Origin: Penicillus capitatus
Taxonomy: Eukaryota > Plantae > Chlorophyta
Length of the DNA: 64,000 nt
Direction: 5' to 3'
NCBI GenBank assembly: GCA_965649825.1
Contig: OZ287697.1
Span: 1,412,351-1,476,350 of the forward strand
The notes under the pieces were generated by a model. That model saw nothing but the letters and a program-made list of their open reading frames with translations, was not told the origin of the DNA and did no database searches. The first letter of the stretch is position 1. Every line of letters starts with the position of its first letter. Positions 1 through 64,000 of this stretch are shown in pieces. The position numbers and the translations under genes are program-made.

Positions 1-2596
1 ACCTCGCTGATGGATAACAGAGCAAGGTCGGCAGGTGGTGCTATCTTTATTGACACAGTTGCTGGTCTCCGGCTGAACTGCTCAGATAGATCGAAAGAGG
101 AGGAACTGCAATTCTTTTCGAAAGAACAGTGGATGTCTATGAGGCGCCTGGTATCTATCTACGACATCTGCCCATCCTGGAAAAACAACACAGCTGAGAG
201 ATATGGACGGGATGTGGCGACCTCCGCATTCGGTATGCGGAAGGAGATTGCTGATGAACAGACAGGATTGCCGCGTTCGGTGAACGGAAATAATTACACC
301 ATACACAACCACAGAAGCGGAAAACCAATTCCCGTGATCAGTCTAACACTAGTGGATGAGCTCGGACAAGGCCCGGTTGTTGGGGAGAACAACGAGACCA
401 TCAAGGCTGTGATGTCTTCGCCGGATGGATTCTTTACTGGAAGTGTTAGCAGGCCTCTGGGCATCGAAAGCGCGAATTTCAATGCCACTGGCTTCGTAAA
501 GCCTGGAGTGTACAAAGTTAAGATTGAGTTCGAAGGAACAGACCTGGAGAGCTTCGAGATCACTGTGGAGGTTAAGCCGTGTGAAATGGGTGAAGTTCCT
601 TCTGGAAACGGGACGTTCTGTGAATCTTGCAACGCTGTCTCTTTTAATTTTTCTCCGGAAGAGGATCTGGAATGCCATCCGTGTCCAGAGAATGGAGACT
701 GTAGCAGTCAAGTCATCCTGCCAAACAAAGGGTATTGGCATCGAACTCCTTGCTCGGAGCGCGTCCAAAGATGTCTGACAACAGAAGCGTGTGACAGTGA
801 CAATCGTGAGGACGAGTTAGCAGAACTCACACAAGATGTGGAATCCTGTGACTTTAATGAACAGTACCTGCAGAACTACACAGAGGCGCAGTGCAGAGAG
901 GTGCGCTTCAAGTTTGACTGAAAACTGCTATCAAGTGTCGTTGGGATTTCAGGGGCATGAAGGGGCACTATGTGGATCCTGCAAGGAATCTTACGGCAAG
1001 TCCCACTCTCATCTTTGCGAAGAATGTCGATCAGATGCTGCTGATGTCGTCTTAGTCGTTCTGTCATTTCTTGTCTTATTAGGCTTATCCAGCATCACCA
1101 TCAGAAGTAACCTCATCTCTGTGTCTTCATCGCAGCAGGGACAGCAAAGGCAAACTACTCCTCAGTTTTCGGCTGCCTCCACCAGCACCCACACAGTTCC
1201 AGCAGAGAGGAGAATAGAATTGGCAGTCATGAAAGATATCACAGAAGAAGGCTCGACTTCTGATCGCAGTCAAGAAGCTGGTACTGGTCAGCCTTCTAAA
1301 GATGCAGAGCTCTCCAAATGGAAGGCAATTGAGCTCTTAAAGGTAACTCTTTCCTCTGTCACATGTTGTGTCCATTCATTATGACTGTTCTGCAGATTAC
1401 AGTGAACTTTTTGCAGGTCACAGCCATAGCTGTGGCAATCGATGCTCAGTGGACATTCGCATTAATCGCACTTTTCCGTACTGCAGGTAAGTAAACAACG
1501 ACTCTGCACGAAAGTTTCTGAACATGTCGTCTGTGATGCAGAGTTCGTTAGTGCCATCACATCGGAAGCCGTCAATCGTTCTGTCGACTGCCTTATCCCA
1601 GCAGGAACGCATCTGCAGCGATCAGTCGCCAGTACACTGGTAGATGCATCGCAGCCGATTGCATGCATCCTTGTCTTTATCGTTTTCTGGCTGGCGATCA
1701 AGATCAGACGTCGCAAGTCATGGATGTATCTGGTGAGGGAGTGTGTCCTCAGCACCCTCGTCGTCTTTTACGTCAGTTACATCTCCATCACCAAGACACT
1801 CATCAACATCTTTAACTGTGTCGAAGTCCACGATTCAGCAACAGTTGGAATCGATGAGACAACAAACTACTGGGCAGTGGACACCGGCGTCGAGTGCTAC
1901 GAGGGATCCCATGCCGCACTGGCCTATCTGTTGGCGTGGCCATTCCTCGTCATCTTTACTTTTGGATTTCCACTCTCTGTCGCATTCCTCGTCGCAAAGA
2001 AGGTTAAAGAAGACTACAAGGAAGGCTGGATATACGAAGTCAGCGGCTTCGTCTATCGATCCTACAGCAAAAGATACATATTCTGGGAATCGGTGATCAT
2101 GATCAGGAAAGCCCTTCTCGCCATCGTGGTCGTCTTCTCCTACGAACTGGGATTCAACGTTCAAGCTGTTCTGGCCTCCTTCGTCCTGATCATGGCCCTC
2201 TACTTTCAAATGAATTGTCGTCCTTACCGTAAAGAGTTCGATCATCTCAATGACGTTGAGAGTCTCTCCATCTTGATTTCTTCTTTCACGTTCATTTGCA
2301 GCATCTTCTTTGGCATCGGTTACGTCTCTGATGAGGTTCGTGTGCTCATCAGCGTTCTCTTATGCTTTGCAAACGTCCTGTTCTTTTTCTACCTGCTCAC
2401 TCTTTTTACTGTCTTCGGAGCCAAGTACCTGAAAACAGTGCTGGTTAGAGAAGGAATTCATCACTCTCCAGCAGACGGCACCTTTCGCATTCTCGGTGCC
2501 TATTTTATCAACTATCTATTCACTGATGTGAAGGATGCCATGGTGAGATGGGTGAATCATGGAAAATCTCGTCGCTATCTCCGTTCTGAAGTTTGA
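1..2596 (+). CDS. R1: Pmp-like beta-helix / Cys-rich / multi-pass membrane receptor-like protein, 5' part outside the window
   Basis: Exons <1-900, 953-1342, 1396-1486, 1542-2596 (TGA). GT-AG introns 901-952, 1343-1395 and 1487-1541 join AQCRE|GHEGALCGSC, ELLK|ITVNFLQ and TA|EFVS in frame. Contains Ig-like, Cys-rich (CHPCPENGDC, GYWH) and membrane segments. C-terminus is RSEV. Confidence 0.92.
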
Positions 2597-4063
2597 AGTG
2601 GCTTCATCATGTTTCACATGTCGATTTGTGGGGGAATGAAGAAAAGAGATCGAAGTTCTCTACCCTTCATCGTATCGACGATGTCGGGTATCTAAAGGGG
2701 ACAGAAATTGTTATCGAACATGAATTTAAACAGAAGCGTCTCATTTTTTGCGGATTAGCCTTTCCATCGTCGTCTTCGATTCGCTGAGATCACTGACTAC
2801 TTGATGCGGAATGCATAGGAAGAATGCTTCATTTCCAACGGTGCATCTCGATCCAGATTCGGACACCTGCAGAACGCAGCAGGATACAAAGGCTGCATCG
2901 TCTATTCGGATTCTCTCTGGACAGAGAGAGATCACCTTCACCTGTCCACACCGACAACTTCTGTGTCGTCGCAAACATTTCTTGGTGCATGTCTAACGGC
3001 AGAGATTCGAATGTTGCCTCCAAAACGCAAAAGTGTGATAAAGTGTGAGAACGTTTACGACATCGGCACAGAGCTGTGTCGTCGAAGGACTCGCCCAAAG
3101 GCAGCAGCATCATCCGTCTGGCAAACTCCGAAGGAACGGACGCAATGTCAGCCGCAGATTCAGTAAGAGAGCTCCTATGTCACACAATCTGTGAAGGAAG
3201 ATTCGACTCGGCGGCTCGTACACGGGCGCGTTCTCTCTCATGGGACGTCGCGCAAAGCACATGAGAGCGTGTTGAGTTTCTGAGAAATTAAGTACCATAC
3301 AAGCCGCAAAACGTCTGCGCGAACATCTGCGATGGGATTACTCTGTGTGAAGACAAAGAACGGAGCGGACCTATAGAGAGAGGGCAGCTGAACAGTGACG
3401 ATATTCTTTGGTTGAGACTCTTTACTGAGCGTCTCGTTCTTCGAAGTCGGGGTAGTCGTCGTCTGCATGTCGCCTGCGACGTCATTTTGAAGGAAACGGT
3501 TCCGTGGCCAAGGAGGAGCACTTGCAGACGCAGCTCTGTGTCGACTGTTTCAGCGTTCGAAAAGCGAAGGCTTATGGCAAATGGCCTGCTACATACAACA
3601 CGACACTGAGAAGCTAACTCTTACCTGGACATCGAATCACTGGAGTCCTCTGTTCAGGCTTAGGCAGGAAATGCATGACATCGCCGACTTCATCGTTCAC
3701 GTCCGAGTTCTGGTGAGAGACGATTCGGCAGCTCTGGCCGCAAGCTGTAGGGGACACCTGTCTGTGATGTGCAGGACTTGGGATGTATCACCTTCTTGTG
3801 TGCTTACCATATGCGAATCTTCGTTGGCGGTTCTTACTGTGAAGTGAGATAGAGTCACACTTTCAGAATGTGTGACTCGGTGCATAAAGATTTCGAGCGC
3901 ACGAGCAGGAAAGGATGGCATTCAACTCCTAATGTAATGCAGTCTCTTACATCTCACACATTCATCTCGACAAGCAGTTGGCTAGTGATTGACAATCGTT
4001 GTCTTATGAACACTTTCGTTTAAATAAAAACATTAACGAACGCAAAGGTGTTCAGATATGCAC

Positions 4064-7000
4064 TTAGTGACTTGCACACCTAGTGGGATTCATGGTGACC
4101 GAGGTTCTGTGGCGGCCACTGTTGCGGCGACGACACAGAGAAAGAAAACTCTGTTTGAACAGGACAAAGATGTGATCGGTTACGTAGACTCTGATAATGT
4201 GATGTGGTCCTGAACGGGGATCGAATGCCACGCCCTCGTTGACCAATGTCATCCTCAAGTATGTGGCACCAAAGCTGAAGAAACAACAGAGAAAACAGAA
4301 CAGCAGCGCGCCGTTGGACAGGACAACAACCAGTGTCACCAGGACTCGAACGACTGAGGAGACTCTGTCTTCGCTGAAGAAGATGCTCGAGACAAAGGTC
4401 AGCGAGGAAACAAGAATAGAGGCTCCCTCCATTTCGTTCAGGACGTCAAGATCGTGGCGGTATGGACGGCAGACTATCTGCACGTACAGGGCGAGAATCA
4501 GGACGAACACTGCGAGAACCTGCTGCAGATCGGCGCCAAGCGGGTAAGAGAAAACAACAACGACGGCCAGAATGGCCTTGCGGAGCAGGATGATCGATTC
4601 CCAGAAAATGTACTTCTTCTCGTACGATCGGTAAAGGAAACCGGCAACGTCGTAGACCCATCCCTCTTTGTAGTCTTCCTTGACGTTGCAAACGGTGAGG
4701 TGACCAATGACGGCGGGAAAGCCGAAAGTGAAGACGACCAAGAACGGCCATCCCAGGACACCTGCCAGGACTGCGTGGGATCCCTCGTAGCACTTGATCG
4801 CGGTGTCGACCGACCAGTAATCCGTCGTGTGGTCGACGCCGACGGAGACTGAGTCGTGGACTCTGATGCAGCTGAGGATGTTGACGAGAGACTTGCTCAG
4901 CGAGATGTAGCTGATGTAGAAGATGACGAGGGCACTCAGGATAACCTTCTTCAGCAGATAGATCCACGTCTTCTGGCACCAGGTCTTGATCGTGAACCAA
5001 AAGATGGCGTAGACGAGGATGGCGGCGAGGGGCTGGAAGATGTCGACCAGAGTGCTTCCGATGGATCGTTCGATCGAGGCAGTCGAAGGAATGATGCAGT
5101 CCACGGAACGATTGACGGCTTCGGACGTGATGCCACTGACGAACTCTGCAGAGAACACAGCGCATTCATCGACTGTTTGATGCCACGGTGATCCCTTACC
5201 GGCGGCTTCGAACATGGCGATGATGGCGAGTGTCCACTCGACGTTGACAGCAATGGCAATTGCCGTCACCTGAAGAAAGTTCACCGTTATCTGTACGACA
5301 GCCCAGAATTTCACTCATTCAGAGTGAGATGGATGGGCAGATAGGACCTTGAACATCTCGACTGCTTTCCATTTGGCGAGTTCTGCATCTTCAAGGCTCC
5401 GGTTAGGATCGTTCTCTTGTTCCTGGTCGTTTCTTTGTTCGGGATCGATTCTGTGATCGTATCGAGAATTCAGAAACTTGCTTGGTACGTGCCCAGTGAC
5501 CATCATCTCTACCATCTGTTCATTGACCGGAACCGAACGCGTACTTGCAGATGCGAGAGCTGGCTGAGAAGCGGATTCTTCTGGCGGCCAAGGCGATGCA
5601 GCAGCAGCGGCAGGAGTTCGATTGCTTCTGACTGTGAAGCTTGACAGTCCCATCAGTACAAGAAAGGAGACGAAGATCAGAGCGTAGTTGCCGAATCCCG
5701 AGAAGCACTTCTCGCAGAGGAAGGAGTGCGTCTTTCCGTAAGACTCCTTGCACGAACCGCAGAGAGGTCCATCGTGTCCCTGTGGTACAACTTGTCTGAG
5801 AAGCTGAGATGACATCCAGACTCACCTCTCTGCACTGCGCCTCTGCGTAGTTCTCGAGCGATTCCTCGTCGAAGTCGCAGCTCTCCACGTCTTTTGTCGC
5901 TTCTATCATATCTTGCTGCCTGTCTTCAAAGTCGCAGCCGTCGGATGCGAGACACCTCTGGATGTGTTCTGAGCACGGTGTCTTATGCCAGTATCCTTTC
6001 TTCGGCAGAATCACTCGGGTCTCGCAATTCCCGTTCTCGGGACACGGATGGCAGGCCAGGTCGTCGTCAGGATGGAAGCTGAAAGTCGATGTCGTGCAGG
6101 GCTCGCAGAAGGTGCCGTTTCCCGATGGCACCTCGCCCATGTCGCAGCTCTTCACTTCGACGGTGATCTCCATACTGTTGATCTGCTCTTGGTCAAATTC
6201 GACGACGACCTTGTAGGTGCCAGGCGTCGCAAACCCGGTGGCGGTGAGATGCACAAGATCCAGGTTCAATGGCACCCCGACGCTCCCATCAAATAAGCCA
6301 TCTGGTGAAGACATCACGGCGAAAACCTCTCTGCTGCCCACTCCAACAGCAGGACCTTGGCCAAAATCATCAACAGCTCTCAGTGTAATCGTGGAAAGCG
6401 GCGTGCCACTCTTGTGGTTGCGTATGACAAAGGCGTCTTCGTTCACCTGTATCACGTCTTCCTCTTTCTCACTGAGTATGTTCGTCTGGACGCTGGACAG
6501 AAAAGATGCAACTTCTGGACCATATCTGCGGGCAGTGTTGCCCGATATAGCTGGACAGATATCCTCGGAGAATTCGAGGCCCATAAGCGACTCCATTTGC
6601 TTCCTTGAATAGAATTCCGGTCCTTCGCTAGACGCCTGGGCCGCACACTGAACTCGCATGACTGCCGCCCTGTCGACGATGATTCCTCCGCCAACTGCTT
6701 CTGCTTCGTTCGTTGAGAAAGAAGAGTTGATGACGGCAACAACGCCGCAGATGTCTCCTTGTCTCGGTGAGCAGTTCTCATGTACCGCTTGCTCCTCTTT
6801 GGCAATATGGAGCCCACCTACGCGATAGAATGATCGATTACTTCCCCTGTGTTGGCATGTTGAGGATACCTCCGTACACTGCCGAGTTGTTCACCACAGT
6901 GCTTCCCTGCAGCTGCAACGCAAGTGATCGGGGATCGGTGTACTCGAGAAAGATCGCTCCTCCGCGTGTTGCAATGTTGTCTCGCATTGTGCAGTTGACG

Positions 7001-10000
7001 CACAGAATGCGCGACGCGGATCTACCCGCGATGGCACCCCCGTCCTTCTCCGCTGTGCAGTGAGACGCAGTCAGATTCTTCGCCCTGACATCGGACTCTG
7101 ACAACGCAATGGCACCTCCATCGACATCGGCACTTCCGTTGAACATCGACGTCGACTCAACGAATATTACGCTCCTCTTCTCGGCACTGACAAAGCCGCC
7201 GCTTTCGGAGACCTTTCCGTCAGCGATTTCCAGGTCACTGATGTTCAGCATCGATTCGGAGAGGAAGAAACTGCCACCTCGCTCGGCTGTGCCATCTGTC
7301 AAGCTGCTGGATGTGATACTCAGGGATGAAGCCTTCATGTGGCAGTGTCCTCCGGATTCTGCAGCACGGTTGCCGGCAAATGTAACGTTCGCCAGACTAC
7401 CAGTGGAATTCCTTCGCAGATCGAGAGCTCCACCAAACTCGGCAGTGTTGTTGCTGATGTGCGCGTCCGTGATGTTGACGGCGCTTGGCTCTGTGGAGAA
7501 CAATCCACCTCCGTTGCTGGCAGCATTGTTCCCTGCGAGAAGCAGTCTGCTGGCAGTGAGAGTGCTCCGAGATATCTCGATGCCACCTCCCTTGTCATCT
7601 GCATGACCGGCTGTGATACTGACATTTGTCAACACAGCAGATGCATGCTCTGTCAGTCGCAGTCCGCCACCGTCCTTCGATGCCCAACAGTCTTGAATGC
7701 TTGTATTCAGCAGTGTGAGATTTCCATCGCTGCCATCGATGCATCCACCCAATCGGGCAGTCCCATTCTCTAGTGACGAATCACTGATCACCAGAAGACT
7801 GTTCTTTCTCGCGTATATGAAGCCACCAGTCTCACAACGGCTGTGCTTGAAAATACATCGACTCAGGATGAATGTGGCCTGCTCAGTATATAGTGCGCCA
7901 CCACTGTACGTGCCCCAATTGTCGATGAAAGTAACGTTTACTAGAGTATCGTTGTCGCTGAAACCTTGCATTATGGCACCACCACTTAAGGCGGCAGAAT
8001 TGTTCCTGAAAAGAGAATTGGTGATGGTCATGTTCTCCAAACCGACAGCATAGATGCCTCCGCCTGATTCAACGACGGCATTGTTCTCAAAAACCAATTC
8101 ATCTCCAGAAATCGTTGATGTAGTTGCTAAGAAGCCCCCTCCAAAATCTGCTTGATTTGCTAGAAAGCGTGTAGAAGTCATGACAGCTGTTCCCGAAAGG
8201 GTCACCCTGACGGCGCCTCCGACATGCCCAGCTTGGCACTCTTGCAAGGTTACGTTGTAAACAGTGACTGTTCCCATCTCGCAGTCCACGCAGCCGCCTA
8301 ACCTTGCAGTGCCATTTCTGAAGACAGACTGTCTGACGTCGACGTACGATCCTCCTTCTTTGATCTCCAGACATCCGCCACTCTCTTCTGCTCTTCCGTT
8401 GCTGAAGACGCACCGCCTGATGGTGGCATTCGATTCGGAGACGTGCACGGATCCTCCCTCAAAAGATGCGGAATTCTTAGTGAAGCTGACGTCGACGAAA
8501 ACGCCAACAGAATTCGTCGAAAGCCTGACGGCCCCTCCCCTCACAGCCGAGTTGTTGCGGAAGAGCGAATCTCTGATGGACAGTTCCGACTCCACGGCGT
8601 ACACGGCGCTTCCATTGTTGTCTGCCAGATTCAGTCCGTCGCCGACGATCTGCGACTCCGTGATGTAGAGTCCCGCTCCTTGTTCTGCCGATCCTTTGTC
8701 GATGCGGCATCTTCGGATGTCGAGTCTGGATTCCTTGGCGTGAACTGCGCCGCCAGACGTCGATGCGTTGTTCTGGTCGAACTCGCAGTCGGAGAGATTG
8801 GCCGTGAAGGCCAGATCCAGATAGAGAACGCCGCCGACGTCGGCTGTGTTCTTTCTGAAAGTGCTATCTGCGACGGCGACGTCAGATTCGGAGGCGACCA
8901 GCACTCCGCCCGAACTGTTGGCCCTGTTGGCGACGAATCGGCATGACTGGATGACGGCAGAGCTAGCCGCTCGAAGACTCAAGGCGCCGCCCTCTCTTGC
9001 TTCGTTCCGTCTGAATGTGTCGTTCGCCAAGGACACGTTCGAACTTGTTGCTGAGATGGTGGATCCAGTCGTGCAAGCATTCTCTTCGAAACGAGTGTCC
9101 CGGACGGATGCAGATGCACTCGACAGTCGAATGCATGGAGTGGCAGCGTCCGCCACGGACATGTTGACTGTATTCCGGACGAAGGAAGCGTTGGACAGAC
9201 CCAACGATCCACTCTCGACTTGAAGGATGGGACACGCGTTCTCTGCAGCGTCCATGCGCTCGATGGATGTCTCTGAACCGTCTGACCCGCGGAACACTAC
9301 CGTACTGGCCTTGGCGGAGTCCGACAGACGGTTCTGCCGAACTCGGATGTTTTCCAGTTGGTTCCGACGGGACAGCGTCACACCACAGTGACCGCCACAC
9401 TCGTTGTCGGAGAATTCGAAGTCCAACAGCTCCAGTCCGGAGCAGGAAGGACTCAACATGGCGAGAGCAGCAGCATCGATCACGGTGTTCCGCTCGAAGC
9501 TGACGTGCTGAAGCTGGATGACGCCTTGCGTTCTGTCAGACTGGCACTGCTCCACTTCGACGATACCTCTAGACCCGGAAGAACCTCTCAGAGAGCAGTT
9601 CTCGAATCTGAGGTTGGCAAGAAGAACACTTCTGGATCTGTACAGAAACGGAGTGTCAAGGTCGCCTTCGCGTGAAGGCTGTTAAGCTTACTTAACAAGG
9701 AAGACGCCTTCTCTGTCGCCTGGACATGTGATGGACGCTTTCCGCGGGGCTCTCGGATAGAGACCCTCCACACTCCGAGTCCTGCCCGTCGCTGCGCTGA
9801 TCGTCACATTCCACGGGATGATGACTGTAGCTGCTGGCTGGATGGCCACAGTGACGTCGAAGACGAGCGTATCTCCTTCTGTCGTACAGTTAACGATGAC
9901 TTGGAGGTCGTTGTCAATCGTCTCAAGAACTGCGTCGTCGATACGCCAAGTACGCGTCGATGTGTCGAGATACCGACGCACCTCGCTTCTGCTCAAAGCG

Positions 10001-10325
10001 CACGCATACTCTGAGCGGATTCACAGACCAAGTTCTCAGTCCCTTGGGACGCATCCGCAGTTTGTGGCTCACCCGGATTTGAACTGTCGGCGTCGTTTTG
10101 CAGCAATTGTTTCCCGAGACGCTGTTCTCCGATGACGAAATCTCCGTCCGCCGACCGAGACGCCGCCATGCGCGAAGAGTCACCGAACCCGTCAATGCCG
10201 TTTTCGGTCCTCTCCGACGCGGGTCGGTTACGGTCCGAAGGCACAGTCATTTCGGTAGTGGCGTATAGCGAAGGCTGAAATGGCACGAGACAGAAGACGG
10301 AAAGAAACCGCAGTAAAGTGGCCAT
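4064..10325 (-). CDS. R2: Pmp-like beta-helix multi-pass membrane receptor-like protein, 1978 aa (YPLG subtype)
   Basis: Exons 10325-10073, 10010-9692, 9637-6870, 6817-5826, 5779-5348, 5290-5200, 5145-4064 sum to 5937 nt. All six introns are GT-AG (46-62 nt) at positions shared with paralogs. Signal peptide MATLLRFLSVFCLVPF, many FxxN...GGA(V/L/I) repeats and NxS/T sequons, TAA stop. Confidence 0.93.
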
Positions 10326-10429
10326 GGCAATAAGCGCAATGTCCGTTTCCCCGACAGTGAGCTCTCGGGCATAAGAAGCTTTGACGGTTGTCTGCAGGTT
10401 CTACCCATCGCCAACACTCCGCCTTATCT

Positions 10430-11700
10430 TGGAAGCTGGCTGATATCAACGGACAGTGAGTATCATTGATTGGTTCTCATTTCCTTCTGTGCGTCGGATT
10501 CGATGGTTTCTTCTGCGACCGCAGGAAGAGTTTGCGTCCCTAGTATTCTAGTGGTCACTTCTCAGCGACGACAGCGCGATGAGAAGAGTCGGGACAGAAG
10601 AAGCGAATCCTGGGCTTGACACGCGGACAGAACAAACCGAGCGTGACGCGACGGACGTGATCGACTCCATCGCGCGGCAGCTGCCCATCGGCCGAGCTTC
10701 CGCATCCCTGCCTCCTTTGCTTCTAGGACGATGCCTTTCACGTAACGGAGATTCCATTCGCAAGCTCACTTTCCCATCGGATTTGACAGAGCAATTTCCC
10801 ATGACACGAATGGTCCAGTGTCTGCGCTCTGCAGGAGCAGGTTAGATGTGACTGAAAACGATTCTCTGTCTCTCCGTCGCGGCTGATACTCGGCAACGCA
10901 TACTGAATGAATCTATCGAGGTTCACTGCCACTATTATTATGCATCTTCATCAAGAAAGCAGAGCTTGAATGGAGATGAGAGAAGCTCCATGACACGGAC
11001 AGGTAAGAACAGACCCCTTCCTGCCAGTCACGTCATTTTATCAGAAGTAATCTAAGCGAAGTGGAGAAGATCAAAAACAAGTCTTTTTGCAGCTGAAGTA
11101 TTCTGTCGGAGAACGTGATCAAAAGAAAGGCATAGTGTTCGGAGAGGTGATCTGCATGACTGGCTGGGATGACACCACATCAATGACATTGCAAAGACGA
11201 TCTCCAAATAGATTTACAACCTTCTAGCTCGCGGCACCGTACACTTCATGTTACCAATCGAGTTGCAGAAAGGTGCACCGATGGCCTTTGACAAGCTCGA
11301 CCGTAGACAATATCGTATTTGACTGTAGATACGCTTCCGTCTCATGTGTTCGTTCTTGCGCGCCTCGTACGAGAACAGGTCGCAGAGAGAACAGACGGAA
11401 GGCCGAGCTCCGGGAAAAGGAAGAATATCTCGCTTCATCCGAAGGCAGAGACTCCCTCGCTGTCATCTTCTTAGGAGAGAGATCCTACCTATTGCGGTGA
11501 CGTCAGAAGATCCTGCTGTCACGAGTGAGAGACGAGAAGTGGCAGTACCAGTCGACTGCATACTTCCGAATCGAAAGCAGACCTCAAAAGACGGCATACA
11601 TAGCATGCTCAGCAGCACATAAGAAATCGAATGGGCTGCGGTCTATAAAAGCTGATGTGAGAGAATACGGTCTTTGGTGTCTTGACTGAATATCATGTCT
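10430..11700 (+). pseudogene. Decayed multi-exon gene of unknown family upstream of R2 (second copy ~34200-35330)
   Basis: Differences between the two copies look mostly synonymous in a + frame (TEQ.PMTR.VQCLRS...LKTI.CLSVAADTRQR.LN). Intron-like GTAAG..CAG is conserved at 11003-11044 and 34770-34810. Each copy has different premature stops. Confidence 0.5.
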
Positions 11701-50100: not shown

Positions 50101-53100
50101 TTCTCTGATGATGTTTCTACCATGGAGACACTGTGCCCTCGGATCTCGCTATTATCGACCGCCTCTATGAAGCCCCCTGAATCTGTCCCATTGTTACCAC
50201 TAAAGTGAGTGTTCAGAAGGTCAACTGTCGAATTGACAACACTCAAGCTGCCTCCAGCTGTTACAGCACTATTTCCCACCATGCTGCAATTCTCAAACCT
50301 TGCAGCGGACTGCATCACCAAACACACACCTCCAAATAACAGGGCAGTATTGCTTTCAAATGAGCAGTTGACAAATACACTAGCCATCGCACTTCTTCGG
50401 ATGACTATGCCGCCAACAAATTTTGCATTTCCGCGACTGAATCGAGAATTCAAGATGTGAAACTTGCTGGGTTCGAAGCTGACGATGCTCCCCCCGTGCC
50501 CGTCTTGTGCGGAATTCTCATCAAAAATCAGTCCATCTCCAGTAAGTTCTGATCCGTTGAGCATGAAAACAGCGCCGCCGAATGTCCTTGCCTTGTTTCG
50601 GAGGAATCTTGAGTTTTTAAGTCGCACTGTGCTCGAATCTGCTGCAGAGATAGCGCCTCCACGTTGCAGTGATGTGTTGTTTTCCATCAAGACATTGCGC
50701 ATGCGAAAAGCACTTTCTGTGTCGATATCGATTCCGCCGCCAGACGAGCCACTCATCCCATGGGAGATGGAGGAATCGCTGAGACTCACACGCGCACTAT
50801 TATAGATGGTGAGAGCGCCTCCCTGCGCAGCACTTCCATTGGTGAAAATGCAATGACTCAAACTGGCATTTGAGGCATCCACGTAGACCGATGCACCACT
50901 CTGTTGAGCGGTGTTTCCCAAAAAACGACATCCGGTCACCGTGGCAACGCTCTCGACCACAACAGACATTGCACCTCCAAACATACCAGAGTTCGCCTCG
51001 AAGGACGAATTTGCTGCGCTCATTCGGCACACCGCCGAACATCTAATGCCGCCAGCACCACTGGCACTTGTACTGTTCGCCACGATGATGTTCCTGACGG
51101 CCATTGTCGAGTTAGCAGCATAAACAGCGCCTCCATCATCTTGTGCTCTGCAAAAAGCAATGGTGCTGTTTTCTACGGTCATGCGGGTTCCAGGAGAAAG
51201 ACCGATGCATCCGCCGAGATGTGCAGTACCATTTGTAAAGTAAGAGCTGGAGATTCTGATATCACCGTCAGATGATAAGATAAATCCTCCACCGTCACCA
51301 GCAGTTCCGTTATTGAATCGACATAGATGGATGGAGATAGTGCAATCACTGTTGCTGTAAAAGCTTCCGCCTCCTCCAGCTGCGGCGTTCCCCGAAAAGA
51401 GACTTCTATGTACTTCCACTGAGCTCATGGTCTGCAGAACGACCACGCCTCCGAAATCGGCTGAGTTGTGAAGGAATGTGGTCTCCGCGATTTCAGCTCT
51501 GCTATGATTTGCGGCACCGAGGAAAGCTCCGAAGCCAAGTCCTGTGTTGTTGGCCACAAGGGACTGTTTCGTAAAGATGTGTGATGTTTCGGCAACAATG
51601 CAGTGACCAAACCCCCTTGCTGTATTTGATACGAAAGTCGCATTGATGAAGGACAGAGAGCTATTCTGATGCGCACTGGCAACTCCTCCATTGAGTCTGG
51701 CGGAACTGGATCTGAAGATGTCATTCTGAGACATCAACTGGCTGTTTTGCTCTGTAGCGATACATCCTCCCTGTGTTGCTGCTGTGCCTCTTTCGAACTC
51801 CGAGTCCCTGACATTCGCCAATGTCCTCCGGATGTGAATGAACCCTCCCTTGGATGCACTTCCATTCTGAAAATGGCATGCTTCGACCGCCAACTCCGAA
51901 TCTGTGACGCGAAGACTCCCACCGTCATCCATTGCGGAGTTGCCACTCATGACCGAATCAATCATCGATAGGGATGACGAGTCAACGAAGCCAACACCGC
52001 CGTGTTCGCTTGCCTCGTTATCTGCGAAGCTGCATCTCTTAATAGAGACCGCGCTGTCAGTCTCGGCGAACAGGACACCTCCCTTCTGGGCTCTGCCGTT
52101 TCGGAAGTCCGAGTCGATAAGAGAGACGTTGGAGGACTGCATGGAAACGGATCCTCCCCAGTATCCTTGATTTCCCTCGAATCGTGACTCTTGGATCGTA
52201 GCCGTCGATCTGACGAGATGGATGCAAGCACCGAAGGGCTCGTCTTTGTCAAACGCTTCCACTGAGTTACGAGAACAGGTCGAATTCGTCAGGGTGAGTG
52301 ATCCTTCCACGACATGCATCGCAGCGAGATGGTTGCGAACAGCCCTGATGCCGTTCGCCACTGTCTTCGATGCAGCCGGAGCATTCAGAACGGATGGCTG
52401 ACGGTCGTGCTCTTCGGTCAGACGATTCCTCCTGGTTGTGAAGTCTTCGATTCTGTTGTCCAACGACAGGATGGCGCCGCAGCCGCTGCTCGAGCACTGA
52501 TTGTCCGAGAACTCGACGTTTCGCATGTCGAGTGCCAGACACGATGTTGAGTGGACCCAGACGCCTGCAGCGTCGACGAGTCGGTTCTCTCTGAAGGACA
52601 CGTGGTGCAGAAGCAGAGTACGGTCCGCCGGCGACGAGGCACACCCCTCTACTTCGATCACCGCTTTCTTCTCCCCCGATTCGCCGAAAGAGCATCCCTC
52701 GAACGCGAAGTTGGCGAGAATCGAACCTCCGGTTCTGCAAGGCATATACCGTCGACGATGTCTCTGCGAAGGACAGGACCTACCGGACGAGGAAGACGCC
52801 TTCGTTGTCGCGGGGACACGTGAACGTCGCTTTCTTGACTGCCTTCGGGAACACGCCTTCCTCGAGCTCGGCGTGTTCCACGAACGCGCTCAGGGTCAGC
52901 GGCCACGGGAGGACTACGCGAGCGGAGGGTCGGATTATCTTCGTCGAGTCGAACAGCAAAGCGTCTCCTTCATTCGTACAGTCGACGAGCGACTGCACGT
53001 CGCTGTCGATTGCATCGAGCACGTCATCGTCTATTGTCCACGTTCTCGAGCTCTCGTCCAAGTAGCGGCGGATGTCGACGCGTCGCAGAGAACACTCGCG

Positions 53101-53524
53101 CTCTAGAACACGCGCTCGGTGAATCGTCTGAGAGGAGAATCGGGAGAGAAATCTCCGACCTGGTTCCCTGGCAGCGTCGAGTCCTTCGGATTGAAGCAGA
53201 ATGCGTTCTCCGTTGCGGACCTTCGCGTAAGAGTATAATGCCGACGATTCGCTATAGCTATGCAGGCTCACAAGTGATGATTCGACAGGAGTCTCCGAGA
53301 GGACATCCTCGCCAACGGTTGACAGTGTACGGCGTCGGACGGGTGTCCGCGTGTCCCCTGGCAACGAAGCAATTGCACATCTCCGTGTCGGAATGCCATT
53401 TACCTTCATGAGTGGAGTGGGGAAACTGCTGGTCGTGTGCTGTTGGCTCTACGTCAGCAGTGGACGAAACAGAGAAGCTGCATGAAGCGCAGCACAGCAA
53501 GAGAAGAATCAACGAGCGTCGCAT
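47137..53524 (-). CDS. R5: Pmp-like beta-helix multi-pass membrane receptor-like protein, 2012 aa (YPLG subtype)
   Basis: Exons 53524-53404, 53357-53160, 53102-52784, 52734-49847, 49797-48806, 48756-48367, 48320-48230, 48176-47137 sum to 6039 nt. Signal peptide MRRSLILLLLCCASCSFS, RILLQ motif, ends PTSL-TAG. One extra 5' intron relative to paralogs. Confidence 0.92.
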
Positions 53525-54229: not shown

Positions 54230-55530
54230 ATGCCTCTCATATCCCTCCTACTTCCCTCCTTGCTGCTGCCAACTGTCTCATGTCGTCCCTCATCTCAAGA
54301 TACGTCAGCATGTAAGACGCTGCCGCTGGGAGATGGGCGATCTGTGACGCACAGCGCTGGACTGTCGAGCGTCGACATCGATCCCATCGCACTTTCGCGA
54401 CGAGGAGATAGTCCACGTCCCGTTCCTCAAAGACACGGCGGGGGTCGACGTCGACGCGTGCTGCAGGAAAGACGTACGGCGACGCCGACAGCGTGGCCCT
54501 TCATACGAGTCAAACCACGAACAATACTCGAGGCGTGATGCCGAGCTACGGGCGTTTGTGTCTGCGCAGAGTACGAGTGCAAACTCAGAACCAAACAAAA
54601 ACGGAAGTACCTTCACGCGCAATCACACACATGGCTCATCGACAAGGCAGTCCTCGATGAAGTAAAGAACGACCTCCATGTCGTTATCAGCTGCAAAGAG
54701 AAAGGCGATACGCTGCTCTTCAACGTTCACGGTTCTATCAAGCTCGTTAGTCGAGTCACGATTCCGTGGAATCTCACCATCAGCTCGGTGACGGAGAATC
54801 GCACTCGGGTTGTCGACGGTGTCTACCCCCGAGCTCCGAAGAAGGCGACTCTCACCTGCCCTGATGCGTAAGAAGTTGTCTTTCTTGTCGAGTAAGTGCA
54901 ATTCTCGTGTGACAACAAAGGCGGCGAATGGCCGAGACAGTTGCTGCGATTTAGCGGACAGAGGTAGATGCCGGTCAAAGCCCACAGGCGAGACGGCGAA
55001 AACGCGATAGGTATGCGTTACCGTACAGTTCGGTGTGGAGTCTGTCACAGAGATGAGAAAACGAGGTTAAGCTTGCCACATCTGACCTTCAGAAATCCCA
55101 AACGAGTGGTTCTGTAGTTCGATGTGGCGGCGTTCGTGATCGGAGTTCTGCGGAAGAGTCGGCGTTTGCCAATCGATGGTGATATCCGCACGTCGATAGG
55201 TGCCTCAGACGAGAGGGCTTTACTGCAAGAGGATAGACATGGATGATCGATCGTCCATGACTATCGCCTTTTCCTCGTGCGATCACATCGTGATGATGTT
55301 TTTCGCCATAACGATTTCGATCGATGTCGTCGATCGGAACGATAGAACGCATCGTTCGATGGCGATCGATTGCGTCGACCCCGTCGCATCGGAATCTATA
55401 TCAAATAAAAACGCATTTGACACTTTTGGGTTAGGTAAATCGGACAACGCCGTTTGTCTTTCTCTCCAAAAGAGTCATGCAAATCTTTTGGAACTGCATA
55501 CGACCGAAACAATGAGTGGCATTTGATACC
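54230..55530 (+). pseudogene. psi2: decayed family member, 5' part (signal peptide, cap exon, start of beta-helix)
   Basis: MPLISLLLPSLLLP...RRRVLQ, then the cap exon EYECKLRTKQKRKYL...SHTWLID...GDTLLF...IPWNLTISS...ATLTCPDA*EVVFLV with TAA at 54869-54871 and a GTAAGT donor at 54892. Degenerate beta-helix entry (SSCDHIVMMFF, AVCLSLQKS) near 55250-55490. Confidence 0.8.
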
Positions 55531-58829: not shown

Positions 58830-61800
58830 ATGACTGTCCACCCCTTCGTCCTTCGGACGAAGCACAGAGCGGCGCTGCTGGTAATCTTCAGCATCGTCGC
58901 CATGTTCGCAGACGCTTCGCTGGATGTCCGGTCAACAGACCCACGACCCACAACAGCGGCTTCGGCGCACTCGAGCGACGAACGGTTGTCTTCGTCGTCC
59001 CCCTCCGTCCTGTCGGTCCATTCGCTCAACGCCCGAACAGAGACAGAGAAACCCTCGGACGACAAAGCACCGAGCCATGCACTGTGGACAACACGTCATC
59101 TAGACAGAGTACGTTTGAAGCCACGTCTTCTTACCTCGAGCATGTTCGAAGAGCGCGCTGCTGTGCAGGAACGCAACGAGGCACGAGCCCTGCGCCAAGC
59201 GGATCAAATTCCTGAAGACGCGACAGGTGATGTCGATGACGTGTCTGCCGCGTCGGACGACGAGCTGAGGGTCGCTGTTCTGGCAGGGCATGTCTGTCGA
59301 CTGACCCAGGCAAAACGCTATCGCTATCTCGACCTGGCGACGCGCACGTGGTCGCTCGACGCTGCCGACTTGGACGACATCGACAACGACATTCAAGCCA
59401 TCATCGACTGCACTCAAGCTGAAGACACCGTGCTCCTCACGACGACGAAAGCCATCCGGCCGGCATCGCGGGTCACTCTTCCGTGGCCCCTGACCGTATC
59501 CGCCAGCGTGCCAAGCGCCGAGCTCTCCTCCGACGGCGTGTTTCCTCGAGCGGAGAACAGGACGACGTTTCGGTGCCCCGGAGAAAACCAAGGCGTCTTC
59601 CTCGTCCGGTGCGTCTCGCAGGCAAAGAGTGAGCCAGGCGGCTGATACAGCGATGTGACTTCTCTCCAGGTCGAGGGATGTGACGCTGGCGAATCTCGTG
59701 TTCGAAGACTGCGTCTTCAACAAGACGGACGGCACCAGGGACGCCATCGTCAGCGTCGAGAAATGCATCTCGGCGGACTTGGACGGCTTGCTGCGTTTGC
59801 ACCACGTTGACTTCCGGGGGAACACCCTCCTTAGGCATTACGCCCTCAAGATGCAGTCCTCGTCGTGTACGGATTTGGAGCTGGTCGACTTCGGCTTCGC
59901 GAAAACGGACTGCGACGGTCCGTGTGGCGTCGCCCTCTCCACCCGTAACAACCGACTGCGTGATGTCCGAGTCCTCAAGGTCACGCCTCCAGACAGATCC
60001 CGCGAAGCACCGTCCGTTTTCCACGCCCCTCCCGGTTCACAGACCGCCGTCGGGCGACTCTCGGCAACGGACAACAAGGTGAAGATCTTTCGCATCGACA
60101 ACGGCTCTCTGACGCTAGAAGATTCGGAGCTGTGGAACAACGTCCTCGCCCAGTCAACGAAGAACATCTCGCGCAGCGTGTGCGTCCACCTCAGGGAAGC
60201 ATCCGCCAGCATCCGGAACTGCACATTCCGCGACAACGAAGCGGAGGACGGAGCCGCCGTGTTCGCAGAGCGGTCCTCCGTCGAGCTGCGCAGGTCGACT
60301 CTGACGGGAAACCGAGGCAAGAGAGGCGGAGCCTTGTATCTGGCCGAGAACACGACGGCTGTGGTCGACGAGTGCACGCTCGAGGCCAATAAAGCCACAG
60401 AAGGCCAGGGAGGAGCGGCGTACGTGGCCAAATGGTCGACATGTCGGTTCAGGAGGAGTGCGCTGCGGCTGAACTCGGCCCATTTGCACGGCGGCGCTGC
60501 CAGCTTCTCGGCAAACGCATCGGGCGTCTTCCGCGACGTGCGCTTTACCGGCAACCGGGCCGACAGGGACGGCGGATCGCTGTATCTGATGACGTCCAAC
60601 GTGACTCTCGAAGGGTGTGTCTTCTCCGAGGGGCTGGCCGATCGCGGAGGACTGCTGTACGCGAGCAGCAACTCCTCCATCGACATCCGCCGCTCGCAGC
60701 TGACAAACAGTTCCAGCAGAAAGGGTGGCGGGTGTCTCTGGTCGGAAAGCGTGAAGCTCGTCGTGAAGAACTCGACCATAGACAGCTGCTCGACGGCGAG
60801 AGAAGGCGGCGCGATGTCTCTGCAGTTCACCAACGCCACGTTCGCGGACCTCGAGATCTCATCGAGCGAAGCGCAGGACGACGGCGGCGGCATCTTCGCC
60901 GTCGATTCGAACATCGAAGAGGCGAGGATGACGCTGATCGGCAACAGAGCTGAGGGAGCCGGCGGCGGCATGTCCGTTCAAGACGGCGGGATCCTCACTG
61001 TAAAGGACGCCTTTTTCCAGAACAACACAGCTGGCGGTACAGGAGGGGCTGTTTGCGTTAAGACCATCGCACGTGGTCGCTTCACCAGAGCCGTCTTCGG
61101 CGACAACTCGGCGTCGGAGAGCGCCGGATCGCTGTACTCGCACGGATCGTCGATCGATTTCGAAGGCTGTGCCTTCGATCAGGGTGAAGCCGAAGAGCAC
61201 GGAGGATTCATCGCCGTCAGAGACGAAGCGACCGTTTCCATCAGACACACGACATTCGAAACGGCGTCGGCCAAGGACGGCGGATGTCTCCATGCACATC
61301 GCTCACACTTCATCCTCCACAACGTGACGCTGGAGGGGTGCAGCTCCGTGGTCGACGGCGGCATGCTGCGTCTCTCCAATGCATCCGCCGAGTTCTCGAC
61401 TGTGACAGGCGATGGCTGGATCGTGGACAGCAATTCGGCGGATGATCACGCAGGCGCCCTGCGCATCCGTCTCGAGACACAGTTCGCCCTCGCCAACTCC
61501 GTTTTCCACGACAGCAGAGCAGACAGAGGCGGGGCGGTGTCGCTGGAGCTGAAATCGAATGCGAGCTTTTCGAACGTGGCCTTCATCAACAGCTCTGCGG
61601 CGACAGAAGGAGGCGCCTTCTACGTTACGGCATCTGAAACGCATCTCGACAACTGCACCTTCCAGAACAGCGGCGCGGGAGACGGCGGATTTCTCTTCAT
61701 CAAGCGGAACGCCAACGTAAGCATCGACAATTCGACGCTGAAAAACGGCACAGGGAGGAATGGCGCGTGTCTGAGAGCTGTGGGCGGACGACTGTCGGTG

Positions 61801-64000
61801 CGTCACTCAGAGATGCATCACTGCACCTCGACAGAAGACGGTGGTGCTATGCGGCTGTCCGAAGTCGCGGCGGACATTTACCATTCCAGCTTCCACCAGA
61901 ACAGTGCCAAATTCGACGGCGGAGCGATCTTCGCAGACAAAGGGAAGCTGACAGGGATCGGCTTGACCATCCGTGACAACATCGCCGATGAGGGAGGAGG
62001 GATTCTCCTGTGGGGATCCACATTCGTGATCGAGAACGCCGTGTTCACCAGTAACACTGCCCTGGGTGGCGATGGCGGCGGGGCCATGTGCGTGAGATCC
62101 TCTTCCGAAGTGAAGCTCGACAACGCGATCTTCGCACGCAACAGCTGCCCAGAACAGGGAGGCGCCGTTTTGGTCGAAGCCTCGCGACTGAGCATCAAGC
62201 GTTCGGTCTTCAGAGATGGAGAGGCGAAGAAAGCGGGAGGCTTTCTCTCGGCGATCTCGAACAGTGCTGTCGTGGTGGAAGAGAGTCAGATGAGCAGAGG
62301 CAGCGCCGAGAAGGGAGGAGCCGTCGCGGTGCTCGATGCGAGCTTCGAGGGACGCCACCTCGAGATCACTAGGTGCACAGCGAAATCGAACGGAGGAGCC
62401 TTTGTCTTCGAGTCCGAGAAGGCACCGCAGAACAACACAGCCACATTCGCAGGCTGCACATTCGCCAAAAACAGAGCCGGATTTGGAGGTCGGATTCGCG
62501 GCCATTGGGTAACACGTGACCCTGGTGTGATGTAGGAGGACTCTACGCGACAACCGGCGGTCAATCGCCCGCCTGCTCGGATGAGAAGGGCGACTGTTCC
62601 GTCGTCACTCTGCGGAGGACGATCTTCGAGAGCAACAACGCCGAGAAAGCGGGCGGCGCCATCTTCGTCAGCCAGTCGAGGAATCTCAAAATCAAGTGTC
62701 CCGAAGCGAACGACAGATCGACCCGCTCGCCAGGAAAGGGAAAAAAGGGTTACCTGGACGGACTTGCTTCGCCAAAGGTCGGCTGTGCGCAGTGGACGGG
62801 CAACAAGGCTGGATTGTACGGCGAAGTCGTCGCCTCTTATGCATCGCGACCCGTGGTGAGCGTTGAAGAGAATGGAGTCAAGACCGTCGTAACGGACAGA
62901 TCCAGTCCCTACCGCATCGAGGGCTACAAGAGTGGTTCGTCGTTGCCCACGATCACGCTACAGGTACAAGACGACTTCCGCCAGAGTCCGGCAATCGGGA
63001 GGGACTTCCGCAACATGATCGCCACCGTGTCCTCTCCAGATACACTCTTCGCCGGAAGGCAAAGTCTTCTGCTGGACAAGCATCAAGTCGAACATCAGGC
63101 CGTCGGATTTGCCAAACCGGGAGTCTACACCATCGACCTTGAATTCGAGGATGACTACGTCGAGAAGGTCAAGATCAAGGTCGAGGTGCAGAAGTGCATG
63201 ATCGACGAAGTGCCTTCTATTAGCGGCACGCTCTGTGAGAAGTGCAGTGCAACGACCTACAGCTTCAACCCGACCGACGACGAGGATCTGGGATGTCAGC
63301 CGTGTCCGGCAAACGGCAACTGCGAATCCCATGTGATCGCACCGAAAGATGGATACTGGCACAGTTCGCCGTGCTCGGTGTACATAAGGAGATGCCTGAC
63401 GTCCTACGCCTGCAACTTCGACGACCGCAAGGCAAAACTACAGGAGAAGACGAAACACATGGAGAGCTGCGATCTGAGTCCGGAGGACATCGAGGAATAC
63501 AAGAAAGCGCAGTGCGCAAAGGCAAGTGTTTTCCCGCCGATCACCGAAAGCCGTCGAAACGGGTCTGTCGCTTCGATTCAGGGTCATTCCGGTCCCCTGT
63601 GCGGATCGTGCGAGTCGGGACACGGGAGCTCGCTGTCTTCGAAATGCCATGAGTGTCCGACTACAGCTGGCAATCTCATGGTGATCGCCAGCTCGACGCT
63701 CATCCTACTCGTCCTGTCAGCCATCACGATCCGCGGGACACTGAGCGCCGTGCGGTGAGACCATCGGGCTCTCCCGGACGGCCTTCTGACGGACTGTGTG
63801 CGTCTTGCAGAGCTTCGGTCAGTCCATTCGCTAAAGTCCCTGAGGAGCCTGACGCTTCCGTCGATGGAGGCCACAGCACAGCGCAGAGTGACAGAAACGA
63901 TGGCGTGCACGCGAGCCCTTCCGTCCTGGCCAAATGGAAAGCCATCGAAATGCTCAAAGTACTGCAAGGTCGACGTCACACTTTTCAAGACGATGGAATG
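58830..64000 (+). CDS. R6: divergent Pmp-like beta-helix receptor-like protein, 3' part outside the window
   Basis: Exons 58830-59226, 59287-59608, 59670-62488, 62536-63521, 63582-63754, 63811-63958 join in frame. Intron 63522-63581 is GC-AG. Extra intron 63755-63810 removes a TGA and restores LAKWKAIEMLK. Next donor at 63959. Confidence 0.9.

Follow-up and report, generated by a model that had tools for sequence, protein, structure and literature searches.

Two groups of described proteins serve as references for the genes reported here. Our comparison set for the membrane portion is the fungal part of PF06011, namely Flc1-3 of S. cerevisiae, Pkd2, Trp663 and Trp1322 of S. pombe and Flc1 of Cryptococcus. 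Channel activity of the Flc/Pkd2 type is established in only a few members, and how these proteins work is still debated. In S. pombe Pkd2, a signal peptide and an ectodomain precede nine transmembrane (TM) helices and a cytosolic tail (10.1101/2022.08.11.503631), and membrane stretch makes the protein Ca2+-permeable (PMC9727806). For the extracellular portion, the reference is Chlamydia Pmp with its repeat motifs and beta-helix (PMC10715098, PMC11166332).

The 64-kb stretch of DNA that we analysed (the window) carries one gene family in tandem. A tblastn map of the whole window, with the spliced 2337-aa G3 model as query, revealed seven intact or edge-cut paralogs (G1, G2, G3, G5, G6, G7 and G8), one membrane-only copy (G4) and four decayed fragments (Table 1). 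The first-pass annotation had counted at least seven intact or edge-truncated paralogs plus a membrane-only copy and pseudogenes, and the map agrees with it. Five copies (G2, G3, G5, G6 and G7) are complete open spliced CDSs of 1762-2337 aa, and all introns in these models are GT-AG introns of 44-64 nt. The splice models also return the range given earlier for the beta-helix exon, 2066-3860 nt. The intron scaffold had been described as common to all copies. This is true for most of the gene, where the five 3' introns are identical in position throughout, but not for the N-terminal intron, which is shifted in G7 and frame-neutral in G3, nor for G8, which has extra introns. In G8, a candidate in-frame intron (63522-63581) is bounded by GC-AG.

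Table 1. Family members, fragments and repeats in the window (nucleotide positions; beta-helix exons marked with their length)
Feature	Position	Strand	Exons	Remarks
G1	1..2596	+	1-900 (stalk), 953-1342, 1396-1486, 1542-2596 (membrane body)	5' end lost at window edge; frame open
Segmental duplication block A	1629..11423			G1 3' end, G2 and flank; 89.5% identity to block B
G2	4064..10325	-	10073-10325, 9692-10010, 6870-9637 (beta-helix, 2768 nt), 5826-6817, 5348-5779, 5200-5290, 4064-5145	Intact; 1978 aa; 7 exons
G3	13134..20402	+	13134-13765, 13821-17680 (beta-helix, 3860 nt), 17735-18723, 18777-19163, 19208-19298, 19348-20402	Intact; 2337 aa, or 2316 aa with the 63-nt frame-neutral intron 13384-13446 removed
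Decayed membrane-body pseudogene fragment	21842..22709	+		Frame broken; duplicate at 35348-35883
G4	~25350..26369	+		Membrane exon only; open frame
Segmental duplication block B	25402..35203			G4, G5 and flank
G5	27842..34103	-	33851-34103, 33470-33788, 30651-33415 (beta-helix, 2765 nt), 29610-30601, 29132-29563, 28978-29068, 27842-28923	Intact; 1977 aa; duplicate of G2
Decayed membrane-body fragment	35348..35883	+		Duplicate of the 22.3-kb fragment
G6	36831..42441	+	36831-37209, 37274-37592, 37646-39711 (beta-helix, 2066 nt), 39763-40751, 40801-41190, 41247-41337, 41387-42441	Intact; 1762 aa
Tandem array in G6 beta-helix exon	38580..39331	+		Period 312 nt (104 aa, ~4 coils); 2.4 copies; 87% matches
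Decayed membrane-body fragment, short	45920..46210	+		Found by tblastn
G7	47137..53524	-	53404-53524, 52784-53357, 49847-52734 (beta-helix, 2888 nt), 48806-49797, 48367-48756, 48230-48320, 47137-48176	Intact; 2031 aa
Isolated N-cap domain fragment	54563..54862	+		51% identity to G3 residues 103-201
G8	58830..64000	+	58830-59608, 59670-62488 (beta-helix, 2819 nt), 62536-63521, 63582-63754, 63811-63958	Most divergent copy; 3' end lost at window edge

Each gene is predicted to encode a giant, N-glycosylatable multi-pass membrane protein. Its layout, part of which is predicted, comprises a signal peptide, an N-cap (predicted, ~100 aa), a right-handed beta-helix of ~26-aa PMP-type coils (688-1286 aa), a stalk of ~330 aa and a nine-helix membrane body. 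The N-termini are hydrophobic, each protein carries 23-41 NxS/T sequons, and the stalk consists of the last coils, a beta-sandwich and a Cys-rich CxxC/DUF7630 module. Several lines of evidence uphold the initial description of the ectodomain as a Pmp-like beta-helix. There are 5-10 GGA[ILV] and 11-20 FxxN motifs per protein; Pfam Chlam_PMP (PF02415) scores 32 bits in G8 (cut-off 20.6), 18.9 bits in G3 and 71-95 bits in Bryopsis and Ostreobium relatives, and there are Beta_helix matches too. AF2 models residues ~110-850 of the G6 ectodomain as regular coils of three strands each (pLDDT >90), a confidence to be read knowing that AF2 over-predicts confident beta-solenoids from repeats (PMC11795689). 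The family is an uncharacterised, green-alga-type group of giant surface proteins, in which a PMP beta-helix is joined to a nine-helix body and whose tandem copies number in the dozens in a lineage of coenocytic algae.

A Foldseek query with the ectodomain model returned generic beta-helix matches alone: adhesins, autotransporter passengers, lyases and tailspikes. The adhesins and passengers among them (Ag43, pertactin, PfbA) would suit structural adhesins or wall-to-membrane tethers, whose beta-helix binds wall or substratum while the body is a mere anchor that neither signals nor transports. In Chlamydia, PMP-type beta-helices act as adhesins, as do other autotransporter passengers, and the window proteins are rich in sequons. 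However, the nearly invariant polar and charged motifs of the body (GF.YR.Y, WES, RK, PYR, LN.E) far exceed what an anchor needs, the body is the most constrained part of the protein (dN/dS 0.04-0.25), and even the membrane-only G4 is constrained (dN/dS 0.17 against G1). We consider a pure tether decidedly unlikely. The lyase matches raise the question of membrane-tethered enzymes (lyase, epimerase or hydrolase) that remodel wall polysaccharides in the manner of PL6/AlgG-type beta-helix proteins. PL6 alginate lyases, AlgG/AlgE epimerases and phage depolymerases do appear, weakly, at E 3e-3 to 0.1, and relatives show a faint NosD match; yet none of these matches reaches E <=0.001, identities are ~10% with TM-scores <=0.4, and the Pfam scans contained no glycoside hydrolase or lyase match. 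Moreover, coil number differs 1.9-fold among the paralogs, more than one expects of a fixed active-site cleft, and in relatives the same body bears lectin-type domains instead. An enzymatic role therefore seems very unlikely.

Judged from AF2 and hydropathy, the membrane body (~510 aa) crosses the membrane in nine TM helices, its N-terminus lying on the outer and its C-terminus on the inner side. The AF2 model (pLDDT 80.8, pTM 0.80) shows nine long helices (residues 28-53, 114-143, 180-216, 220-250, 281-317, 341-362, 364-385, 390-417 and 423-462), then a C-terminal helix; loops with Cys residues and a sequon fall outside in the predicted topology. The motifs GF(L/V)YRSY, WES, RK and CRPY..LN.E, picked out in the first-pass annotation, recur as nearly invariant alignment columns. 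That annotation had also suggested a resemblance to Flc/Pkd2 and to GPCR-related proteins. The window copies themselves match nothing: no Pfam model was matched by their membrane bodies, PF06011 being absent even at E<=1, a sequence-profile search of the PDB was empty, and no PDB fold was matched by Foldseek (best E 0.2, TM-score <=0.2). To our knowledge, no PF06011 protein has a solved structure that could serve for a fold comparison. An exhaustive search places the body in a family of 13,508 representative clusters at E<=1e-3, with neither a Pfam model of its own nor a solved structure. Its relatives do reach PF06011, in 4 of 22 (best 5e-7) and 20 of 86 proteins (best E 7.3e-13), 24 in total, while any other Pfam family matches at most one of the same 86. 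For three full-length proteins of Bryopsis/Ostreobium, the match covers profile positions 156-406 and stays at 23-26 bits (gathering score 28.5 bits). The body thus appears to be a divergent branch of the PF06011 superfamily, including fungal Flc1-3 and S. pombe Pkd2, through a remote homology that is transitive via these relatives. The TRP_N (ML-like/Ig-like) ectodomain of PF06011 proteins gave no Pfam match in the window proteins or the relatives scanned. The GPCR relation did not stand: there was no 7tm Pfam match, and GPCR rows in the Foldseek search of the PDB had TM-scores of ~0.16. A relation to polycystin channels was likewise not supported, with no PKD_channel match in Pfam and no polycystin row in Foldseek against the PDB.

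As yeast PF06011 members are named flavin carriers (PMC9600462), the remote homology could also point to Flc-like transporters of small molecules (flavin, haem or lipid) whose ectodomain captures or concentrates the substrate. We regard this as highly improbable: the homology is remote, nothing in the dataset supports transport, and a beta-helix of 700-1300 aa is not known as a capture device for small-molecule substrates.

Segments are duplicated, copies are truncated or decay, and blocks of coils expand; in these ways the family grows and shrinks. Blocks A and B constitute a 9.8-kb segmental duplication, and G4 is the 3' end of a G1-like gene that was cut at its edge. Further paralogous blocks lie on the same 577-kb contig, and the lineage-specific clade comprises about 45-56 copies; the window is best read as one section of a far longer tandem array of this family. 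Together with the 312-nt array, these data support birth-and-death evolution, and the rapid duplication and loss proposed at the outset is borne out by the duplication, the truncated and decayed copies and the large clade. Patchy divergence suggests exchange between copies as well.

This pattern had been taken to indicate an immune-type or self/non-self repertoire, in which diversifying selection makes the ectodomains track variable ligands. The low copy number named in advance as speaking against such a role was not found, as the clade size shows. A variable ectodomain on a more conserved body was indeed confirmed (median paralog identity 35% in the beta-helix and 55% in the membrane body). 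The large lineage-specific tandem family, the segmental duplications with their truncated and decayed copies, the variation in coil number with its recent 312-nt array and the patchy dS, which suggests cassette-like exchange in mid-helix, would all fit. However, the identity gradient is modest, and members are also present in a unicellular chlamydomonad. The intact copies are on average under purifying selection. We calculated dN/dS by the pairwise Nei-Gojobori method (NG86) on recent duplicates, with 2-3 sequences and 100-codon bins and hence no site-level resolution. For the beta-helix exon, dN/dS was 0.33 for G2/G5 (0.28 overall), 0.45 and 0.40 for G2 and G5, respectively, against the copy L001, and 0.23-0.25 for G8 against L001/L002. 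The bins ranged from 0.1 to 0.7, the one exception being 1.11 at a tiny dS (0.04), so that there is no robust window above 1. At pairwise and 100-codon resolution, we therefore see largely the uniformly low ectodomain dN/dS that had been named beforehand as an argument against the immune reading. With values of ~0.2-0.45 in recent duplicates, diversifying "immune" selection lacks support, and we judge such a repertoire unlikely. If the repertoire were ligand-diversified, it would be a new recognition system outside animals and plants; our results do not show this.

Our preferred explanation, to which we give a roughly even chance, is that these proteins form a set of surface sensors for ligands or for the cell wall, each coupled to a Pkd2/Flc-like membrane body. 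The beta-helix would bind a polymer or surface outside the cell, be it the wall polysaccharide of the alga itself or one of foreign origin, and pass binding information or mechanical load to the body, which may then gate a flux of cations (Ca2+) or transport, much like a receptor-channel. Some Edaphochlamys members carry the same body with a P-domain and an F5/8C lectin ectodomain, and this fits a binding module on a common transducer. On the other side, the beta-helix fold also occurs in enzymes, as PL6 lyases and AlgG epimerase, weakly matched in Foldseek, illustrate, and the window copies are linked only transitively to PF06011, in which only a few proteins are established channels.

A siphonous green alga is one giant cell, which has to close wounds within seconds and to distinguish foreign material from its own wall and extruded cytoplasm. 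A bolder version of the sensor explanation, which we put forward as speculative and rather unlikely, is that these algae possess dozens of receptor-channels, each with a lectin-like PMP beta-helix of adjustable length on a Pkd2/Flc-type Ca2+-permeable body, so that a ligand or wall strain would cause Ca2+ entry. If true, eukaryotes would have a class of surface sensors that has so far gone unnoticed and that unites a bacterial-type adhesin fold with a fungal-type channel body. Across the tandem family, different ectodomains naturally sit on one and the same transducer, and its members are candidates for wall, wound or Ca2+ sensors of giant-celled algae. As an evolutionary bridge, it could help to define the role of PF06011-type bodies.

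Among named proteins, hypothetical proteins of Bryopsidales are the nearest relatives, those of Caulerpa first; the family tree points to a siphonous green alga as the source of the window, closer to Caulerpa than to Bryopsis or Ostreobium. The named relatives include g397, g3773-g3796 and g6360/1 of Caulerpa lentillifera, GMH45542.1, GMH44751.1 and GMH45944.1 of Bryopsis sp. KO-2023, scf_2235.1 of Ostreobium quekettii and, from Chlamydomonadales, KAG2491397.1 of Edaphochlamys debaryana. Caulerpa gene numbers adjoin; therefore, the family is clustered there too. We know of no study of any of these proteins. They are alike in architecture and, with membrane-body E-values of 1e-50 to 1e-174, true family members, but they are only 21-34% identical, and the organism of the window has its own expansion clade.

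Like plant NLR, RLP and WAK genes and animal immune clusters, the family lies in tandem arrays, has duplicated by segments and expanded within one lineage, includes truncated and decayed copies and varies in the repeat number of the ligand-facing domain; their hallmark, an omega >1 in the recognition domain, was not found here in pairwise tests, and there is no homology. Metazoan polycystin-1/PKD-REJ proteins may serve as a functional analogy only, as giant modular adhesive ectodomains on a multi-pass channel-related body: REJ, GPS, PLAT and PKD_channel domains are absent from the window proteins in Pfam, and Foldseek found no polycystin or TRP match in the PDB. With Chlamydia Pmp, which are type V autotransporters, they have in common GGA(I/L/V) and FxxN motifs at comparable density, a long right-handed beta-helix and a paralogous multigene family. 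However, the window genes are eukaryotic and have introns, their products have signal peptides and N-glycosylation sequons, and their helix continues into a Cys-rich stalk and an alpha-helical body of nine helices, which anchor it. Neither the Pmp middle domain nor the autotransporter beta-barrel was matched by Pfam in the window proteins, and the C-terminus is alpha-helical; they are therefore not members of the Pmp family, and only the repeat type is common. With fungal Flc/Pkd2 proteins they share, as far as predicted, a signal peptide, an extracellular N-terminal domain, a nine-helix membrane domain and a cytosolic tail. They differ in their ectodomain, a PMP beta-helix plus stalk of 1250-1800 aa instead of a ~150-aa ML/Ig-like TRP_N, in one additional TM helix at the start of the body and a disordered loop of ~60 aa, both ahead of the conserved core, and in their tandem expansion to ~45-56 copies, compared with 1-4 genes in fungi.

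Eight copies of one gene and four fragments of it are spread over the full 64 kb, as revealed by a tblastn search with the protein of copy G3 as query (G1-G8 denote the paralogs). This agrees with the gene cluster noticed in the first-pass annotation. The GC content is about 50%, long gene strings of the prokaryotic style are absent, and long ORFs are repeated in one set order on either strand: first a Gly/Asn/Ser-rich repeat ORF, then one of ~330 aa that contains Cys and a hydrophobic one of ~350 aa. In G3, splicing these ORFs over short GT-AG introns yields a complete open CDS. Anchor-based models of the remaining copies gave complete open CDSs for G2, G5, G6 and G7, while the open frames of G1 and G8 are each cut at a window edge. 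The beta-helix exons measure 2066, 2765, 2768, 2819, 2888 and 3860 nt (the last in G3), in exact agreement with the range given before. No second gene family was detectable anywhere in the 64-kb window; two intergenic regions (4.7 and 5.3 kb) contain only short ORFs of random appearance and, in each case, a single small fragment of the family.

Introns are 44-64 nt long throughout and of the GT-AG type, with one candidate GC-AG intron in G8 as the sole exception. The single intron scaffold suggested earlier is real for the 3' part of the genes, where five intron positions are common to all copies, but it does not extend to the N-terminal intron, which occupies the same site in G2, G5 and G6 (62-64 nt) and a different one in G7 (46 nt). 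Extra introns are present in G8. One candidate intron in G3 (63 nt, GT-AG) and one in G8 (60 nt, GC-AG) are stop-free multiples of three and hence frame-neutral whether kept or spliced; the counterpart at the G3 site is obligatory in G2, G5 and G6. Intron retention or alternative splicing is possible at both.

Coordinates of the gene copies and other features (window positions unless a locus is named)
Feature	Position	Strand	Remark
G2	4064-10325	-	CDS 1978 aa
G3	13134-20402	+	CDS 2337 aa
G4	25350-26369		membrane-only copy
G5	27842-34103	-	CDS 1977 aa
G6			CDS 1762 aa
G7			CDS 2031 aa
G8	58830-64000	+	cut at window edge
Beta-helix exon, G2	6870-9637
Beta-helix exon, G5	30651-33415
Beta-helix exon, L001 copy	L001 2796-5717
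Candidate intron, G3	13384-13446
Candidate intron, G8	63522-63581
Segmental duplication	1629-11423 and 25402-35203
Copied pseudogene fragment	22206-23157 and 35530-36486
Segments shared with L001 and L002	3856-13606 and 55959-63879
Intergenic regions	42450-47130 and 53530-58800
pol ORF	L002 2914-5646

Birth-and-death evolution, which the first-pass annotation had put forward, is well supported by a segmental duplication, pseudogene copies, a tandem array and paralogous blocks. A self-comparison of the window uncovered a duplication of 9.8 kb (89.5% identity) that produced G5 from G2 and also gave rise to G4, whose source was the 3' end of a G1-like gene; the duplication edge lies 87 nt into the last exon. 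A pseudogene fragment has also been copied, and G6 contains a tandem array of 2.4 copies with a period of 312 nt, equal to four coils. By means of a window ORF, we placed the window on the ENA metagenome contig ERZ25074695:ctg340394_13x_l (576,620 bp), where it occupies ~338.5-402.5 kb in reverse orientation. Two window segments recur as blocks of 83-97% identity in two related metagenome loci, L001 (on a 313-kb contig) and L002, and in each locus a G8-like gene comes immediately after a G3-like one. L002 might be taken for an allele, or a sister species, without G4-G7, but this is excluded by the shared 576,620-bp contig: L002 lies ~74 kb past the window end and is therefore a paralogous block. 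For L001, either a haplotype or a further paralog would fit. Adjoining the paralogous block, L002 carries an inserted Ty3/gypsy-type pol ORF (RVT_1, Integrase_H2C2, rve); no such element was detectable in the equivalent region of the window.

Copy number is high. A profile search found ~35 additional distinct last-exon ORFs with 45-86% identity on at least 15 contigs, and further family members occurred in every contig neighbourhood examined. In a second metagenome, the locus L004 (ERZ26696514:ctg296184_87.61x_c, 46,591 bp, 87x, labelled circular) encodes three family members and a retroelement pol. Its circularity is probably an assembly closure over a tandem repeat and not a true circle. Additional family members lie on a 4.08-Mb contig (180x) of the same sample, in which a closely related alga is therefore the dominant organism.

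A FastTree phylogeny of 181 membrane bodies groups the window copies with the ENA ORFs in a clade of their own (45 rows, SH-like support 97). This clade reaches 56 rows before it takes in a named species; the next to branch is Caulerpa, with Bryopsis and Ostreobium at a greater distance. This gene-family tree would place the source among the siphonous green algae (Bryopsidales), on the Caulerpa side. The nearest named relatives of the membrane body are, in order, Caulerpa lentillifera, Bryopsis sp. KO-2023 together with Ostreobium quekettii, and the chlamydomonad Edaphochlamys. Family members in public genomes are annotated as 'hypothetical proteins', and we did not find PMP-repeat multi-pass proteins of this architecture described in algae in the literature. 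A profile of 10 last-exon sequences, scored against 1.84 billion representative proteins, matched 13,508 clusters at E<=1e-3 (506 at E<=1e-30); the membrane-body family is therefore very large.

Turning to the protein, the ectodomain model clearly has the fold of a right-handed beta-helix. Each protein has the GGA[ILV] motif 5-10 times and FxxN 11-20 times, and carries 23-41 sequons for N-glycosylation. In Pfam searches, Chlam_PMP scored 32 bits on G8 (cut-off 20.6) and slightly under the cut-off on G3, while relatives reached 71-95 bits and also matched Beta_helix. AF2 modelled the G6 ectodomain from a 4-sequence alignment as a regular beta-helix with three strands per coil (residues ~110-850, pLDDT >90); the N-cap and stalk were less well modelled (pLDDT 40-70). 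As a caveat, repeats can lead AF2 to over-predict solenoids (PMC11795689). Foldseek against the PDB returned only generic right-handed beta-helices at ~10% identity, none at E<=0.001 (a phage tail protein, PL6 lyases, Ag43, pertactin, PfbA, AlgG and Rhombotarget A), and with such matches no enzyme family can be assigned. The fold by itself indicates neither binding nor catalysis; a passive adhesin or tether and a tethered wall enzyme are alternatives to a sensor at this point. The stalk contains CxxC-type Cys pairs, and its motif C..G..G.LCG.C stands directly ahead of the first TM helix, with a DUF7630 match in 10 of 22 family members.

The selective regime bears on a further alternative, that of an immune-type diversifying repertoire. 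Nei-Gojobori estimates for G2 versus G5 gave a dN/dS of 0.28 over the whole gene (overall dS 0.21): 0.14-0.20 in the N-terminal exons, 0.33 in the beta-helix exon, 0.27 in the stalk exon, 0.12 in the first membrane exon, which covers the Cys motif, TM1 and the loop, and 0.25 in the remaining ones (nine-TM core), with no 100-codon window above 0.64. For the beta-helix exon, G8 versus L001 and L002 yielded 0.23-0.25, and comparison with the L001 copy yielded 0.45 for G2 and 0.40 for G5, where bins were mostly 0.1-0.7 and a single bin reached 1.11, at a dS of 0.04. Median paralog identity (G2/G5 excluded) is 35% in the beta-helix, 46% in the stalk, 49% in the N-cap and 55% in the membrane body. 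Constraint is thus weaker on the ectodomain than on the body, but positive selection is unsupported; selection is predominantly purifying. On present data, the earlier label of a diversifying recognition system is unearned. The dS itself is strongly uneven along the beta-helix exon (0.04-0.61), and a central block is mutually divergent across G2, G5 and the L001 copy. This patchiness suggests coil-block exchange or gene conversion among paralogs, not steady divergence. G4 has an open frame and, compared with G1, a dN/dS of 0.17 at a dS of 0.35, too constrained for a copy dead since duplication. Upstream, the open frame runs on for 52 nt past the homology edge, across a possible acceptor TGTAG|TC, and G4 may therefore give rise to a truncated or chimeric product.

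The membrane body is intact in the six full copies. AF2 (22-sequence alignment) predicted nine long helices and a C-terminal helix (pLDDT 80.8, pTM 0.80). The predicted topology would place the NRS sequon and the conserved Cys-pair loops outside, which fits the sequence features, and the GF(L/V)YRSY...WES...RK segment and the C-terminus inside. Against the PDB, the model had no Foldseek match (best E 0.2) and the sequence profile gave noise only; no GPCR, TRP/polycystin, MFS or ABC fold was recognisable, which leaves the suggested GPCR relation unsupported. The stalk and membrane exons of the window had no Pfam match, and at a threshold of E<=1 the window copies still gave no hit to PF06011 (the fungal Flc/Pkd2 'TRP-like' family). 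This family was matched by relatives, however: by 4 of the 22 aligned ones (best 5e-7), by three full-length Bryopsis/Ostreobium proteins (23-26 bits, profile positions 156-406 of 426), and by 20 of 86 further family members (best 7.3e-13), in which any other Pfam family appeared at most once. The proposed Flc/Pkd2 resemblance is thus right in kind, though remote and transitive.

The Edaphochlamys debaryana protein KAG2491397.1 has the same body and the DUF7630 motif without PMP repeats; its ectodomain consists of a proprotein-convertase P-domain and an F5/8 type C (discoidin, lectin) domain. This swap implies that the body acts as a common transducer module, on which the ectodomain has been shuffled. 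Beyond the anatomy, family relationships and duplication history established here, we infer that these proteins would be surface sensors: a beta-helix of adjustable length would bind carbohydrate or a surface and, coupled to the Pkd2/Flc-like nine-helix body, would elicit cation flux or transport. An Flc-like transporter is the rival reading of the body. Schizosaccharomyces pombe Pkd2 combines a signal peptide, an Ig-like ectodomain, nine TM helices and a cytosolic tail (10.1101/2022.08.11.503631), and is Ca2+-permeable upon membrane stretch (PMC9727806; cf. PMC6727746, PMC9600462). The algal genes represent a new combination of known kinds, a PMP beta-helix on a PF06011-type body, notable for its size and tandem amplification.
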